In this document: positions 20,951 through 29,700 of the stretch, in pieces
Position numbering within the stretch: the stretch's first letter is position 1
Layout of the letters: each line of letters opens with the position of its first letter
Assembly: GCA_964199315.1 (NCBI GenBank)
Contig: OZ116703.1
Coordinates: 31,248,001 to 31,312,000 of the forward strand
Direction: 5' to 3'
Length of the DNA stretch: 64,000 nt
DNA from: Orbicella franksi
Taxonomy: Eukaryota
The notes under the pieces: model-generated
What the model was told of the DNA's origin: nothing
The model's input: the letters and a program-made list of their open reading frames with translations, nothing else
Database searches by the model: none
Made by a program: the position numbers and the translations under genes

Positions 20951-23596
20951 ACAAACTTTCATGTTTGGCAATGATTATAGTTATTACAATAATGTCTGAT
21001 GATTATACATACATACTTTGGTAGTCTTCAGCATATAGGTTTCACTTGGTGTTGGAGCAGTTTTGTTGCCATGGCGGGTTCCTGTTACCGACGTGTTCTA
21101 GGCGGGTCAGCGGCCTTTTTCAAGAAAACTCAAAATGGCTGACTGCTACATCCTTGATTGACGGTGATTTACGCTAGAAGTACTCAGGCCCCCCTCCGCA
21201 GATACCTCGCAGCCGATCTCACGTAGTGGTAGGAGAGAAGCAAGAGGAAGCTGCCATTTTAAAAAATGCAATTAAAAGTGCGTATATGCTGGTCTCCATT
21301 AAGAGCTAAGCTATTTTACTTACCAACTCGAGCCGTGTGGTAAATTGCACGGAAATGTTTTGAAATTCTACTTTCATAGGGAAATTAGTAAAGAGCGTGG
21401 CTTTCAATTCCTAAATAAAAAGCAACGTCATGGAGTTTGTGAGGACTTTCAACTTATTCAGATATGCCGAACATCTGGTTGACTACCTTGTTGGCAGTGT
21501 ATTATGCGTCCCCCCCCCCCCACCCCCTCAAAAGGTATCGTAAATAAGTAGACCTTCCTTTTCCAGGAGGGAGAGAGTCTTATAGATATGGAGCTTTTCG
21601 GAAAACCGCAGATTTGAGACAATTCGACTCCTTCTTTGAAAAGAATATGAGCGACGAATTCCACCCAAATGCGCGAAACGGAGAATTAATAGACTTTGAG
21701 AAGGTCCAATACGACAGGGAAGAAATAACGCAAGGAAAAAAAAAACCATTATTTAGGATCTGTCACATCTTGCAGAACACGACCGCATCTAACAACTCTT
21801 CAGTTTGCGTCGCGTTCTGAGAACGTTCAAATTTGTTTAAATACCCTCCTAAGGTTTAAATACCTTCCTAAGATTTTTTTTGCGCTTTGTTTTTCCTTTA
21901 AGCCTTGGGGTCTGCGTTAGAAACCTCATCCCTTGCATCTTGGCTAATTTACGTGGTAAAACTTAACAGCTCCAGAACATTTTAAATTGCCTTATTACGA
22001 GTATTTACCTCATCTGGAGACGTGTTTACAGCTATATTTCGACTGCTCCACTTCGTTGCATCCTGTGTGAAGCCTAAAGCAAGTTTCACTAGTTAAAAAT
22101 ATGTTACACGCGGCTATTCCACACAAATTTCGTTGATGTAGTCTTGTGATTTTACTCCTTTGAACATGTAAGAAACAGATTAATTCAGATTTAAGATTTT
22201 GGTCTACCGCAATAGTCAATTGCTAACATCAATTTTTCATTCATGCACGTAGGAAATTGGATCAATTTGTATCTAAAATAAACGGGTTGTTCGTGTTTTG
22301 TCAATGCTTGGAGATGAATGCGACTAATTAATTCACCCAGAGAGAATACATTTTACTCGATGGAAACATGTTAAATTAACTTAATATCCTTTTGTTACAC
22401 ATTTTTCGTAGCAAGCTGCTTTTGGAGTGAGCCACAACTTGATTTTTGATATTCTAATATGTTTCATTATTTTAAAACTAATAAATAAGACGCGATGCTG
22501 AGAAATGGTGGCCAGGCAAATAGGGGTATTGGTTGTTGTTGTTGTTTGTTTGTTTGTTTGTTTTTTTTTGGGGGGGGGGAGGATGACGTAAGAACTTCCT
22601 ACTTCCCTGCTACTGGCTGCCTCATTCCACCCGTTACTCGCCACCTTAGCAATCCTCCTCTCCCCACCCCCCTCTTCTGCCACCTCTCGTGGAGTTCCCG
22701 CTCCCTTACACTGGGTTTCCGTTCCCCTTTCTTTCGAATATGATTCATAGGAAAGGACTTTGGGGTGGGGGAAAGTGGATACATGAAAATTAAACCGGTC
22801 CGAGCATCGCACCAGGAAATAAATTAATATGAGTCGCAACAATCACAGTTTGTGTTGATAATTTATTAAAAACAATTGCTCGTCAGTATACAAGTCGATA
22901 AGTACTATGGATAAGCAAAACCACTCTGCCTGTACTGCGCTTCTTGTTATCCTTTAGATTAGTATAAAAATACTCTGCGCGTGCCTTGCAATTAATGGCT
23001 GCACGCCTTGGATTTGATACAAAATACTTGCTTAAATTTTCTTCACACTCTTACGTGACTTGCACGTGCAGATATAAATAGCATAAATACATGCAGATAA
23101 ATAAAATACATAACACTCCTGATAAGTAAAATTGGCTATTCTTGTTGGATTTAACAAGTTCTGTTTCCTTCGCGTCTAACTTAAATCAAATTGACGGTAT
23201 TAAAATGCGTTGGGTCTTTTCACGTGATCTACACGTCTGAGATTGGTTCATTATCACGTGACTTAGCCGTATCTATTGCAGAACAGAAACATGATATATA
23301 CAACATATCAAGCTTTCACAAATTCAGCTTTTTTAAAAGAATTGTAATGCCACAAGAGCGCAGTATGCTACCAGTGAAGATCAGAAAAGAACATTTTAAA
23401 GAAATCAGTAGAAAATTGGAAGATTTATAACAAAAATATCATTGTCTTGGATATGGAAAAAAATAGTTACAACTAATATTTTCCTTGCTTTAAATTCAGG
23501 CCGACCTGCAGACCTGTCCGCTTTTTTGGTTTTTCTTACGACTATAATTGCTTCACCACACCGCTTCTAACAGTTCTACGTTATCACAGAGACAGT

Positions 23597-23790
23597 TTAG
23601 TACTTTTTTTCTCTGGACACTCTTCTTGTTCGTACACGTTCCATGGCTTTCGCTTTGCTTTTGCTGCAAAACTTGCTGTGTTCCTCCTCATCTTGATGGC
23701 GACAATCTTCCCCACAGTACCCCTGCACGTTACATCTTTGGCACCAGTCATTCGCCACTTTGCCGCAAAAACAGAAATACTCGCATTTTT
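23597..23790 (-). CDS. Terminal exon: MYND-type zinc finger and basic C-terminus
   Basis: Acceptor acaccag phase 1; CFC-x7-CQRC-x4-YC-x3-C-x7-H-x3-C, then [13 protein letters not shown]. Not in the ORF track. Confidence 0.8.
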
Positions 23791-26700
23791 CTGGTGTAGT
23801 GAAATGAAAGACAGAGTTACTTCAAACCTAACATTACATCAAATCCTGTTTATAATTAGCCTATGGCTTCTCGTGTTATTAGTATTTCAATTGGACTTTT
23901 CCATAGTATAAGCCTTCAATTTCAAATTGATTTATCGACACTTCAAGTGAGTCCAGTGAGTCTCTACTTAATAAACTTCATAATAAATAACTGGATCATT
24001 GGATAATACAATTCAAGAGTTTTCATTGGCTTAACCATCATGGTAAATTTAACAGTTATAACATGCTCTACAAATATGGTAAACGTACGCGAAATTGTTT
24101 TTCGGCGTTTTTGTTTTTATTTTAGTTTAGCTTTCTATATTTTGGGGGCGTTTTTAATAAAGCAATTATTCTACTCGCGCTTACTGAATATGAGATGATT
24201 ATAGTCAACTCGCGCCTCGTTAACTATCTACCATCTCATATCCAACTCGTGTCTGTGGAATAATTGTTAATTAGATAACGATTATCCCTATTCAAAGAAC
24301 CTCGTTAAGTAACAAATAACCCTCACTTACGAAACCGACAATTTCTTGTAGTTAAGAGAGGATGAAGAGAGTTAGTACCCCATACAGGTCTTTTTGCTTA
24401 GGTAATCCCTTTTCAGTTATTTTTTAGATATTTTCCCCTGGTCTCCCGCGGATAACAGTACCACGCGTGTTGTGTGGATGTTTCCAGGGAAGAAGCAAAC
24501 GCGTGTGAGTCATTTGAGCTGTCCACGTGAGCAAAATGCGTGCCACAGGATCAGTTATTTCTCGACCCTCCTGGGTTTTTCAAAACGGAAATGAGGATCA
24601 CCTTGGGAATAAGGCGTACAAGGGGGGTAAATCTTTTACTTTTCACTCTACCCTTCATCTGAATGTTGCTCACAACAAATGTAAGTAGCTGTTCATTTTT
24701 GTAAGCGCATATTGAGTAATTAAGACACATGAATGGCTCACCTGCTCCATGGAACACTTTGACATAGATAGTCTTCTTGTAAACCCCGGAGACAATCAGT
24801 TGATATTCTGTTCGAGGGTCAATAATTTTAAACTTGCGCGATATAAACAGATATCTTGCTGAGCCCAGGTATCCAGGCAACGAGCGGTTGATGTCCTGCC
24901 GCAATTCGTTTAAGGTTCCGGATGGGTTGACCTTGACAACCCCTGCCATATGGGCGACGACCCCCAGCTCTGCATTGGGGCGAATAACCTTCACTTGCAT
25001 CTTTTGTTGCTTAGTCGAATCTTTGGGATAAAAGAGAAAAATAATTAAAAAAATCTTTATTGGGCTATGTAGTAAAGCCTGCGTACGAGCCTAGTAGCCT
25101 ATCAGGCCGGCGCCTACCTCCGGTTTCCTTGACATGAAGCGACCAGAAGTATTTCTACTCCCCCCTGGATGCGATGCTGGTCCATCGCGGGGTTATCCCA
25201 GCATTGAAGGGGTTATCCCCAGCATCCGGATTATTTTACCATTAGACATGATTAAGAAATTACTATCTCCACGGGTATTTGTAAGATAATTATCTTGATA
25301 ACGTTATTTAGAAATGATTTTACCCCTGGGGTATGAAGTGATGACGTTAACCCTCGGATGTGATTAAAGACTCACTTTACCCTTAGGTATTGATGAAGTT
25401 GTAATTTTACCTCTTGGATGTTTGATTTAGGAACGATTACGCTTCTCGGATAAGATAAAATTACGACTAGACTGCTTTTTTCTGTTTAAGGAATAGCTTT
25501 AACTTCTTGGCATGCGGTAGAAACATTCGTCTCAAAGGGAAGTACCTGTGAACAGCAAAACGCCAGGCATGTTTTGCATCTGATCAACGTCAAAAGATGA
25601 CGCCCTTCGACGCAACACAGCTTCTTCTCTTAGACTCGCGACTTCATCATAATCATCAAATCCATCTCGCAACATTTCAGTGTCCTCAGATGATTCGGCT
25701 GCGGAGTGGAGACGAGTTTGAGAGCCAGCCGCTGAAATAACAACTTTAGGAGTGCCCAAACGGGTCGTCGAGTCGTCGCCAGGATCACTCGGTTGTAAAC
25801 TGCCGGAAGAACTGGCGACTGGTGTCTGATTTCTGCTCGTGTTCGCCGAGGGATTCGGTGTGGTCCGTTTGGATGACGTGACGGGAAATGCAAGGACCGG
25901 CTTCGGTAGATCAGCTGAGTCTCTCTTCGAACGCTCTTGATTCTGTGAACAGAATGTCAGAAAAGTTGTAGCTAACTATTGAAAAACAAGTTTGATGGCA
26001 ACAGTCGTCAAACTGAAAACTGGAAATGAATGTAGCAGCCACTGCGTCCAGCGAAAAAACACACGGGCAAAAGGAGTCCCGAAATGTCTGCTCGTCAAAT
26101 TAATTGACTTGGAACTTTTTGTTATCCTGCGGAATTGCGCGGAAAATCTCCTAATACTGAAGTGCTTATTAACAATGCTGATATGCGATCTGCAGGTAAT
26201 CAAAATGGTAAAAAAGGGCAGTGCTGTTTTCTACTGAATGTTGTAGACCTAAAACCAAATCACAAAGGATACAGACTACCCGCTGAACTAATTAAAACGT
26301 AAAGCAAATACATGTAGCCGACAAAAAGCGCGAGAAAACGTGTACGAGTGAGCCACAATTGGTTTTGGTTTTACTTGTAATTGGATAACAAAGTGGCGCG
26401 AGTTCTTTTTAAGCCAATCGCTTTACGTGATAATGCAAAGCCAGAGCAAATGCCGATTACTTTCGACACTTAGAGAAAACCACTCTAAAAATTTTAACAG
26501 CTGCGACATTTGCTCTACCAAGTCACCAGTGTGTATCCTAATTTAACTTGGCATCATTAAAACGCAGTGTTACCTCAAACGCCGGTAGCTGTTCCTCTCT
26601 CTCTTCAAATGCTGGTTCCACGATTTCTGTAAACGCCAACGGAGTTGCATACCTTAATTGGCTTAGACTTCTTTGCGAGCCAGTAGAACTCTGAACGGAC

Positions 26701-29700
26701 CAGGCTTCACTCTTGCTCATCGTAGCATACTTGGCGTCTGCGCTTGGAAGTTCTTTTCCTTTCTCGTTGTCGCTGTAAACATCTGGGGTTTCTGGCGGTG
26801 TTGGGTTAATTTTGGCTTCTCTGTTTTTCCGGCACACGCAGTACAATGCGATAACAAAAATTAAAATAACGACAAACGCACCCACACAAGCAACAGCGAT
26901 GATGTAAACTGGCATGCGGTCTTCATCTTCTGGCACAGGTTCGACTTTCTTTGTTTCACCATCGACTTTCATGATTGGTAAGGTTGTTAGCGTTTCTCCA
27001 TTAAACTCGAACTTCAGCCCTTCTTTCACATCCTCCCATAATTTATCAACCGTGGCCTCCCGCTTCGATTCAGGCACAGTCATGTTGAATGAAGCCACAA
27101 TACTGCCTTTTCTTACTACACAGTCGCTTACTGTCGCCTCGGGGTACATCTCTGATAGCTTGATCTCACACTGACTTTGAAATTGCGCTTCTCTCCCTTT
27201 GACAAGCTCGTCATAGTCGCCTTGGAAAGTTATTTCCACAGGGAATATAACAAGCGGATCATTGCATTCTGCGGTGGACTCAGAGATTAGCAGTTTGCGC
27301 TGTGGTATGAAGCTTGGCTGATTTTTAACCCAGGTAGTAACAGATGCATTAGACACGAGATTGGAAGTGAGAAACATTGAAACGACATGTTTCATTCCAT
27401 CAAAAGGCAACTCTTGCAGGATGGAAACGCCCACATCAATATATTCCAGCTCCGATTCCGTGGCTGCAATAACGTATTTTCCGCCTTCGTAACTAGCTTT
27501 GATCAGACCATCTACGTATAAAGCCCCGTCCACGGTTAATTTCGTGCCTGCTGTAAAACTTGTCTGTTCAAATTGAGCAGCAAAGCGTGGCCCAGGGTTT
27601 GAAAACAGAAAGTAAACCTCGGTTTGCGGAGACGAGACCGCTGATCCATCTTTGTTCGCCAGTTTCACAGCGAATTCTAAGCTGCAACGATCCGTTGATT
27701 TTGGAATATGGTAATTAAGCTCTGTCACAAACCTTGCCTTTTCCAGATAAATAAGGGACAAGAAGATGGCGTCGTTATTCTCGATGGCCTCGTTCCAGGT
27801 AACATCCATCCGCGCTTTCATCTCTTCAGTGAATTGGGATTTCGAAGATGCAGAGATGTAACCACTAATGAAAGCGACGTCTATAATGTCAAACGCGCAG
27901 TCTAAGTTGATATCACCCAGATGCGTATCAGGACAAGGGGAAGCTACGTTTGTAGGTGGTATCGGTGACAGCTCTTTATTTACTGTCCTGAAAAATGCAA
28001 CATCGACTTGAGGAATACCGCTTCTCTTAGATGTAAAGGCAACTTCTCCTACATTTTCTGACAGGGCCTTAGATTCCATCAGCGGTCCGAAGATATTGAT
28101 TGAACTGCCAAGCACTGTGTATGGGAGGTCTGTAGTGACTGTATCTAGACTCAAATCGTTCGTGCCGAACTGAATCTCTACATGTACTGCCAAGATTCCA
28201 ACAGTGCCAGGGTTTACTCTGATCGCCATTTTCCAAGTATCCCCTTCACTTAGTGACGGAATAGCTGCTCCTTCTTTGCTTCCAACATCAATTTCGCCAA
28301 CGTTTGGCTCCAGGTTGCAGTAAACTGCAAAGTCTTTTGTTACGCTTGAGTTTCCAACAAGCGTGGCTGTTATGGTTACACGACTGCTGCTGTCTGCGAC
28401 CAGAGTCACTACACCAGAGGACGGATGGATTTTTGCAGTAGCAGGGTCGCTTGAGGTGAACCCAACCAAACCACCGTATCGGGTGAAGTTGTTGATAAGA
28501 TGGGTGGATCCATCCTCCATTTCCACCTCGGCAAACGGTGATGCAGTTGTTCCCGTAATACCGCTCAGTGTCGTGTTGACACCCTCCAAGCCAAACCGAA
28601 TAATCGCAACTGTATTTAGGACTGTTGAAGACAATGTTAGATCAACACTTGCTGAAAGACTACGAGCAAACTCTGCCTGCAATGATACCATTCCGCTCAA
28701 GCCGCTTCCTTCGATGGAGAAGAGATTACGCGGAGCGGGTCCAAATTCAAAAGTGCCTCCAACTAGCTGAGCATTTGTTAAAGCAAACGAAGTGTTAGCT
28801 GAAGTGGAAACGTCCACGGTTTGCCCATTTGTCAAACCAAGAAGAACTTTGAGTAAAACTCGCTGATAGTGTCCCGGGATAATTTGTTTGAGCTCAATAA
28901 CCTCTGAATCGTCGGGAATATCCGAATATGGAACAGCTTTGACGGCCAGGTTGCTGCTGCCCACCACAGTTACATTCACCTCGACCGAGTTGACGTTCGT
29001 GACGTGAACAAGGAGTTTGCCAATTCCAGCCAAACCCGCGTTGTTTGCTATGACGTAAGGTACGCCATTATTGACAGCACTGAAGAGGTTATCGGACTTC
29101 GACAAATCATCCAGTGTGTAACGGTTTCCATTCATGGTGATATCTACTTCAGTTCCATTCTCGTACACCAGGATTATCTCCAATGTAGACCTATCTGCGA
29201 TGCCAGCCAGACCTGCTGGATTGATTGGCGAGGCAATGAATGATTGGATCAAACGCGCCTTGGCGGTGTACATTCCACTGTCGTCTATGTTAAGTACCCG
29301 TATCTCGAGGTTGGTAGTAATTGTTCTTCTGTTGCTACTGACCGGGCTGTTATCGGTAACTGTAACTTCCAAGTTGTGCTGATTAATTGTTTCAAAATCC
29401 AACGCCTTTGCCAACGTGATGACACCTGGTAAAGATTGTAATGAAACAATTGTGGCAATCATATTTTTTATTAACAATGCACTCGGCATTCCAGAAGTCT
29501 GGTCCATTAATAAAAGTTTTGCACCCGAAAGCGAAGCCGAATTTCGCTTCCCAAATCTTACGTTATTTGACCAGTTTGAAAAACTTTCACTGAGTATAGA
29601 TCAAGCTCAAGACACATTGATTGTGGACACAAGTCCTCGGTACTATGGATAAAATCTTGAAAAATACAAAATGCTAAGATTAGTCAAGAGTTTAGCTCGC

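Follow-up and report, generated by a model that had tools for sequence, protein, structure and literature searches.

A cadherin-superfamily receptor gene of the coral Orbicella franksi with a spliced cytoplasmic tail predicted to hold a ubiquitin-like domain and a divergent MYND finger

Gene organization and transcript evidence

The stretch of Orbicella franksi DNA considered here (NCBI GenBank assembly GCA_964199315.1, contig OZ116703.1, positions 31,248,001 to 31,312,000 of the forward strand) is 64,000 nt long and is referred to as the window; positions are counted from its first letter. Its minus strand carries a gene for a receptor of the cadherin superfamily, the cytoplasmic end of which is the subject of this report. 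The product is ordered as IPT/TIG repeats, G8/beta-helix regions, cadherin repeats, BIG/cohesin/dockerin modules, a predicted SEA-like domain, one membrane helix and a tail of 376 aa. The upstream minus-strand open reading frames (ORFs) encode many IPT/TIG repeats, G8 and beta-helix regions and cadherin repeats, with Pfam Cadherin matches of E 3e-52 and 5e-47. The large exon that follows, here called the big exon, starts with a partial cadherin repeat (26.6 bits, just below the 28.8-bit cut-off) and contains a weak Pfam dockerin match. The receptor belongs to the cadherin superfamily, and its tail is part of this cadherin-type gene; the architecture presumably fits the coherin type of ancient cadherins.

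The big exon lies in a 989-aa ORF running from 29507 to 26538, which crosses the membrane helix and then meets an in-frame stop at 26538. An earlier note on this DNA, made from the letters alone, had placed a hidden donor ahead of that stop and claimed a tail of ~380 aa, in phase through three further exons. The reading of the sequence bears this out, with a donor GAG/gtaaca at 26574/26573, acceptors at 25942, 25020 and 23790, and further donors at 25546 and 24742. The four joined pieces form an open frame to a TAA at 23597-23599, with intron phases of 0, 1 and 1.

Transcript data over 23200-28500 came from two polyA RNA runs, used as raw reads, and from two sets of RNA contigs, and all three predicted joins (26574>25942, 25546>25020 and 24742>23790) are present in both raw reads and contigs. 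In run X23 they are covered by 29 (26574>25942), 22 (25546>25020) and 25 (24742>23785/23790) reads, with GT..AG ends on the minus strand at every join; the library is unstranded, and strand was inferred from the splice dinucleotides and the reading frame. RNA contigs of X1 and X7 show identical joins, and X7 contig 11 (1166 nt) links 27062..26574, 25942..25546 and 25020..24742 in a single piece that runs from the transmembrane exon to exon C. RNA depth is 0-1.7 in the introns and 10-37 in the exons, intron 1 staying at or below ~5 % of exon depth; a short form ending at 26538 would account for no more than a few percent, in line with unspliced precursor. Matching joins are carried independently by P0025, a fragment of a spliced transcript from a related coral, and by a spliced jellyfish protein (P0043). 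The big-exon gene does not end at 26538; three more exons (B, C and D) are spliced on, and the gene end suggested by simply reading the ORF is thereby corrected.

Could the three exons instead be a separate small gene, or a minor isoform of a protein that mainly ends at 26538? The depth of the last exon and 3′ untranslated region, about twice that of exons B and C, would agree with such an arrangement, but higher 3′ depth also fits the bias of polyA libraries. Because the three joins have equal read counts, a separate first exon is not indicated, nor are there loose ends that would mark one. The contig that ties the membrane exon to B and C, the low depth of intron 1 and the single chain of the jellyfish protein likewise speak against it, so this alternative is regarded as highly improbable. 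The refuting outcomes that the earlier note had named, a lack of 26574>25942 reads or transcription of the three exons solely from a first exon of their own, are thus answered in the tail's favour. The sole loose ends at an exon edge are five reads at 25022, which are identical to the end of exon B but for one allele difference.

The last exon opens (23786-23790, minus strand) with AGAGT in most reads and with AAAAA in the reference, so that three of the five bases differ. The difference is in frame, converts Lys to Ser at a residue that varies among species, and both forms occur in X7. Given the in-frame change and the exact reference form in X7, the AGAGT form is an allele in reads from other colonies rather than an alternative splice. 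No further join was found within the 3′ untranslated region (23200..23596) in the RNA reads and contigs.

Conservation of the tail

A search with the big exon recovered the orthologous exon of other corals as prokaryote-style ORF calls, at identities from 89 % down to 42 %. Orthologues in other anthozoans were checked at four loci from four other corals (L001-L004), and in all four exons B, C and D lie downstream of the orthologous exon in unchanged order and on the same strand. Identity to the window is 68-79 % for exon C, 52-75 % for exon D and 35-68 % for exon B, and falls to 42 % in the ectodomain part of the big exon. Exon C has a ratio of non-synonymous to synonymous substitution rates (dN/dS) of 0.11-0.22, and exon D one of 0.09-0.30.

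A profile of exon C, which encodes the ubiquitin-like (Ubl) domain, returned 25 proteins at E up to 0.001 from 1.84 billion representative proteins. No match fell outside the receptor family; the search would overlook an exon that introns divide, and this makes it weak evidence of absence elsewhere. Among the matches, P0025 is a 201-aa spliced fragment comprising the end of exon B followed by C and D, and is 84 % (Ubl exon) and 90 % (MYND exon) identical to the window. P0043, named in EukProt as a 938-aa protein of the jellyfish Sanderia malayensis, holds in one chain cadherin repeats, a dockerin-like stretch, GSIVV, a membrane helix, the Ubl domain and then directly the MYND finger; its precomputed Pfam families are Cadherin and zf-MYND. 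A homologue search with the tail region of this jellyfish protein found only the query itself, full-length giant proteins lying beyond the scope of that search.

The other matches are exon-sized ORFs, and the contigs of four of them (L005-L008) were read; they include a more distant cnidarian-like contig, a jellyfish-like contig and marine metagenome contigs. In three of the four (L005, L006 and L007) the Ubl exon is followed by a MYND-type exon, after a phase-1 intron at the equivalent place. The fourth, the short metagenome contig L008, stops after the Ubl exon, ahead of which it shows a dockerin-like region, the first part of the SEA-like domain and a membrane helix. Since the coral loci, P0043 and L005-L007 share this exon arrangement, the Ubl-MYND tail is, judged on sequence, a fixed feature of the receptor family in Anthozoa and Scyphozoa.

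Linker motifs and the basic end

Between the membrane helix and the Ubl domain the coral tails retain several short motifs. K[IV]NPTPPxTP follows the helix, and the end of the big exon keeps ATPLAF..VEPAFEEKEEQLP. Exon B has no Pfam match and is modelled at a predicted local distance difference test (pLDDT) score below 50. In corals it has LPKPVLAFP at its start, then an acidic run, then LRRRASS[FIML]D about 20 residues ahead of the Ubl domain. Pro-aliphatic-Ala-Phe motifs (TPLAF, EPAF, LPAF and PVLAFP, at 26574-26648 and 25883-25909) are conserved in coral tails and may serve for docking, possibly of the tail's own finger.

The basic C-terminus with its RRVS, which the earlier note had pointed out, is present in the window sequence and is not conserved family-wide. 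RTRR[VI]SR is kept after the finger in three of four coral orthologues, and [RK][RK]xS in L004, L005, L006 and P0043, the last of which runs ~80 residues beyond it. The basic end is absent from the metagenomic orthologue L007 and from a paralogue described below. Its conserved core resembles a site of the basophilic-kinase type rather than an evident nuclear-import signal, and a classical nuclear-import signal is not clearly present in the tail.

The ubiquitin-like domain

The tail was analysed through references for the separate exons and through the natural spliced relatives P0025 and P0043, and an AlphaFold2 model was built from a 23-row alignment with P0025 as its first row. Residues 50-135, the exon C domain, have pLDDT 87-97 and a b-b-a-b...b order, and the domain is thereby predicted to be a beta-grasp ubiquitin-like fold. 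The matches among solved structures (VIA) are the USP7 Ubl domain (Z 8.8, root-mean-square deviation 2.1, 76 aligned), the Dsk2 Ubl domain (Z 8.3) and ubiquitin (~Z 8), and all Foldseek matches are Ubl, UBX, LC3 or RBD domains, the HOIL-1L UBL included. Fold matches in the AlphaFold DB comprise a region of diacylglycerol kinase zeta/iota, plant KIN-10A, UBXD1, RnfH and SPATA1 1-143, with a DGK-iota-like domain as the best cluster match. SPATA1 1-143 has the top query TM-score in the Swiss-Prot list (0.38; E 1.8e-3) at 14 % identity. The label 'SPATA1-like' given to the domain at first thus held for the fold, with SPATA1 among its matches, and failed as a statement of sequence membership. By sequence, the sole Pfam match is TECR_N at E 0.04, and the Ubl alignment yielded no useful match when used as a profile against the PDB. 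A feature search of the ESM Atlas gave no usable match either.

The Ubl domain might chiefly govern the fate of the receptor, as a built-in tag for the proteasome, for p97/UBX-type factors or for endocytic sorting factors, with the MYND finger as an auxiliary contact. The best solved-structure matches, which are shuttle- and UBX-type Ubl domains and ubiquitin (Dsk2, Rad23, Ddi1/2, p47 and UBXD1), are of the kind that this reading would lead one to expect. However, beta-grasp matches at Z 7-9 are generic and uninformative on function, sequence identity is 8-21 %, and this reading does not account for the close, conserved coupling to a MYND finger. A role mainly as a fate tag is accordingly thought unlikely.

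The MYND finger and its paralogue

The finger follows the Ubl domain at a spacing of about eight residues. The canonical MYND ligands (PF01753) are C-x2-C-x7-9-C-x2-C-x4-6-C-x3-C-x7-8-H-x3-C, of the C4-C2HC type, and the window finger reads C-x-C-x7-C-x2-C-x5-C-x3-C-x7-H-x3-C, with eight Cys and one His invariant in corals. Ligands 2 to 8 are invariant with canonical spacing, whereas the first knuckle is F-C-x-C-G and not C-x-x-C-G in every family member. Pfam and PDB alignments begin at profile position 3-4, past the first canonical Cys, and an extra Cys four residues upstream of the coral knuckle is absent from the jellyfish-type orthologues. Pfam zf-MYND scores are 14.6-21.6 bits in the other corals and 26.6-29.1 bits in P0043, L005, L006 and L007, the latter above the gathering cut-off. 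A five-coral finger profile matches the ETO/CBFA2T1 MYND structure (2dj8) at E 3.4e-5 and DEAF1 at 0.012. In the P0025-based model this part has pLDDT 64-85, with short hairpins and a C-terminal helix, and the model contains no metal. Because the distant orthologues pass the cut-off and the profile matches the ETO finger, the window finger is assigned by orthology as a divergent MYND member, with zinc binding predicted. The first description, a MYND finger with all eight zinc ligands, therefore stands for ligands 2-8 and the ETO match; it needs amending at the first pair, which is C-x-C, and the window copy itself scores below the cut-off.

MYND fingers are peptide-docking modules of cytoplasmic and nuclear proteins alike, and in the ETO finger a groove Trp and Gln contact a proline-rich peptide. 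In the window the groove segment is CRHQDEEEH (23678-23704), with Glu at the usual Trp position. The replacement noted there holds throughout the family: the Trp of C-Q-x-x-D-W-x-x-H is exchanged in all orthologues (for Glu, Gly, Val, Ile or Arg), the Asp is kept, and the Gln is kept in distant orthologues only. With the canonical Trp missing and a C-x-C first knuckle, the ligand of this finger is probably something other than a classical PxLxP peptide.

A Ubl profile run against the 497-Mb genome found the window locus only. A MYND profile and a search with cohesin/dockerin/SEA protein both found a paralogue on a different contig, at G000:C2:13083864-13088824 (+) (locus L017). It is 27-30 % identical in the cohesin/dockerin region and has a membrane helix and a long Ser-rich tail; reading its ORF translation by eye places a GSIL motif where the window gene has the GSI of its SEA-like domain. 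Its Ubl exon is weakly similar (hhalign E 1.2e-4) and is followed by a matching phase-1 intron before the MYND exon. Its finger shares the LFCPCG knuckle, keeps a canonical CQSKDW with both Gln and Trp, and ends 12 residues later with no basic end. Loss of the Trp thus appears, by sequence comparison, to be specific to the window lineage, which includes the jellyfish, and the two paralogues, differing at the groove Trp, amount to a natural experiment on MYND specificity.

The coral genome also has an ETO/MTG-type gene (L012, G000:C13:19879929-19880045 (+)) with a fully canonical MYND finger, CWNCGRK...CQHKDWENHHHVC, which offers a point of reference within the genome.

The juxtamembrane domain

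The 110 residues ahead of the membrane helix are modelled as b-a-b-b-a-b, with MUC16 SEA5 as the best structural match (Z 9.3; Foldseek rank 1, E 7.8e-3). TROP2/EpCAM and the SEA domains of TMPRSS6, GPR126 and HAT come next, other SEA domains reaching Z 7-8. A Pfam search gave no SEA match for this domain, which on the model has an SEA-like (ferredoxin-like) fold. G60, S61 and I62 are invariant in 14 orthologues, jellyfish included. They fall in the b2-b3 turn, where MUC1 (G/SVVV) and dystroglycan (G/SIVV) cut themselves, and by analogy the Gly-Ser-Ile is a plausible candidate for a self-cleavage site. Of the new observations, this one alone touches on the cleavage suggested in the earlier note, and it does so indirectly.

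Other features of the window

The features of the gene end are listed in Table 1. Two intronic segments, 25147-25323 and 23908-24260, reach RNA contig depths of up to 17,928 and 6,491 in X7; they show loose ends and an opposite-strand join (24156/24246) and look like expressed interspersed repeats with copies elsewhere. One X1 contig is without 12 bases at 27851, an in-frame length variant within the ectodomain exon. Runs of N occur at 54738-54902 and 59218-59948 (896 bases in all) in the upstream part of the window.

Table 1. Positions of the features at the 3′ end of the receptor gene
Feature	Position	Strand	Evidence
Juxtamembrane SEA-like domain (predicted), b-a-b-b-a-b	26946..27254	-	AlphaFold2 model m0bc63ffc52f5, pLDDT 86.7
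Invariant Gly-Ser-Ile	27099-27107 (GSIVASF = 27087-27107)	-	b2-b3 turn
Single transmembrane helix MPVYIIAV...LYCV, then stop-transfer CRKNRE	26835..26915	-	Translation; kept in orthologues
End of big exon, membrane-proximal tail	26574..26834	-	Donor GT 26573-26572; junction reads; tblastn against four coral orthologue loci
Conserved motifs in membrane-proximal tail	26784-26813 and 26574-26648	-	tblastn, coral loci
Start of intron 1 with in-frame stop 26538-26540	26538..26573 (intron 1 = 25943-26573)	-	Depth 0.4-1.7 against 15-31 in 26563-26916
Exon B, disordered Ser/Thr/Pro-rich, then acidic linker	25546..25942	-	Junction reads on both sides
Exon B conserved motif LPKPVLAFP	25883-25909	-	Coral orthologue alignment
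Exon B conserved motif RRRASSFD	25589-25612	-	Coral orthologue alignment
Exon B conserved motif MPGVLLFT	25547-25570	-	Coral orthologue alignment
Exon C; predicted Ubl domain ~24743-25003	24742..25020	-	AlphaFold2 model, orthologues
MYND-type zinc finger (zinc binding predicted)	23666..23773	-	Pfam, orthologue profile
Basic C-terminus, RRVS 23615-23626, stop TAA 23597-23599	23600..23638	-	Translation, orthologues
3′ untranslated region, extending below 23200	23200..23596	-	RNA depth 28-38, continuous with last exon

Comparison with known receptors

Coherin-type cadherins were reportedly treated by Nichols et al. in 2012. With these and with TMEM132 the coral receptor shares a succession of cadherin repeats, BIG, cohesin and dockerin-type modules, the last a weak Pfam match, and a single membrane helix. 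TMEM132 tails carry PP1-docking (RVxF) and WIRS motifs (PMC6030884, Sanchez-Pulido and Ponting 2017). The coral tail is unlike them in this respect, neither WIRS nor RVxF being conserved in coral orthologue alignments read by eye; it has the Ubl-MYND pair instead, and an SEA-like module before the membrane.

Fibrocystin (PKHD1) resembles the coral receptor in its giant ectodomain with IPT/TIG, G8 and beta-helix regions and in its one membrane helix. Its tail is short, with ciliary targeting and a nuclear signal, and has been proposed to signal after cleavage. The coral gene differs in adding cadherin repeats, cohesin/dockerin and SEA-like modules and, in the tail, folded Ubl and MYND domains. 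With the SEA receptors MUC1 and alpha/beta-dystroglycan, which are cut at G/S[VI]VV, the coral domain shares the predicted fold and its place adjoining the membrane, and its own invariant Gly-Ser-Ile-[Val/Ile] lies in the b2-b3 turn; unlike theirs, the coral domain is without a Pfam SEA match, and its best structural match, MUC16 SEA5, comes from a mostly uncleaved set. The fingers of ETO/MTG8 (NHR4) and DEAF1 are the best sequence relatives among solved structures, with ligands 2-8, Gly-Tyr-Cys and the Asp aligned, whereas the coral tail finger has C-x-C, has lost the Trp and is membrane-tethered, theirs belonging to soluble nuclear adaptors. Full-text literature searches turned up no account of a MYND finger in the tail of a cadherin. 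The gene encodes a cadherin-superfamily receptor of known kind with a previously undescribed conserved intracellular module.

Proposed function of the tail

The splicing of the tail and its conservation across cnidarians are established, the Ubl and SEA-like folds are supported by models and the MYND finger by orthology, and from here a mechanism may be inferred. MYND fingers being peptide-docking modules, and the Ubl-MYND pairing being conserved, the pair would serve as a docking platform tethered to the membrane, bringing partners from the cytosol to the receptor. The phase-1 intron between the Ubl domain and the finger is kept even in the paralogue. The platform would read a non-canonical ligand rather than the classical PxLxP peptide. 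In corals, RRRASS before the Ubl domain and RRVS after the finger may let a basophilic kinase such as protein kinase A tune the docking, and the SEA module may turn the ectodomain into a force-sensitive joint that is cut in advance, as it is in mucins and dystroglycan. This whole reading, a docking platform with a non-canonical ligand and two coral RRxS sites behind a possibly pre-cut SEA joint, is favoured with a confidence somewhat above even. Three observations weigh against it. The Ubl domain has no sequence-level relative outside the receptor family, so that homology gives no hint of its class of partner; good conservation of the RRxS motifs is confined to anthozoan-type orthologues; and the window finger, at 18.4 bits, stays under the 22.7-bit gathering cut-off of Pfam zf-MYND.

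The earlier note had suggested a Notch- or fibrocystin-like route, with ectodomain shedding releasing a Ubl-MYND fragment as a nuclear effector. On such a route an SEA cut or shedding would be followed by intramembrane cleavage, and the Ubl-MYND fragment would enter the nucleus to recruit co-repressors. The SEA-like fold, with its invariant G-S-I at the self-cutting position of MUC1 and dystroglycan, and the single-pass membrane helix would suit such a route, as would the basic C-terminus in corals and the nearest MYND sequence relatives, the nuclear co-repressor adaptors ETO and DEAF1; fibrocystin, MUC1 and several cadherins provide precedents. However, SEA cleavage alone keeps the halves attached and frees nothing inside the cell. 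Neither the paralogue nor L007 has the basic end, which elsewhere resembles a kinase site; no orthologue keeps the Trp that the ETO-type co-repressor peptide requires, and many MYND proteins are cytoplasmic. A nuclear route is consequently rated as quite improbable. A private cnidarian adhesion-to-nucleus pathway, in which force or ligand parts the SEA joint, intramembrane cleavage follows and the freed Ubl-MYND fragment acts in the nucleus via a non-PxLxP ligand, would likewise be a long shot.

Membrane-tethered docking by the Ubl-MYND pair remains the favoured account. The intracellular wiring of the cadherin-type receptors of early-branching animals is almost unknown, and the tail described here offers concrete handles on their signalling: a Ubl-MYND domain pair, a possible point of self-cleavage and two candidate kinase sites.

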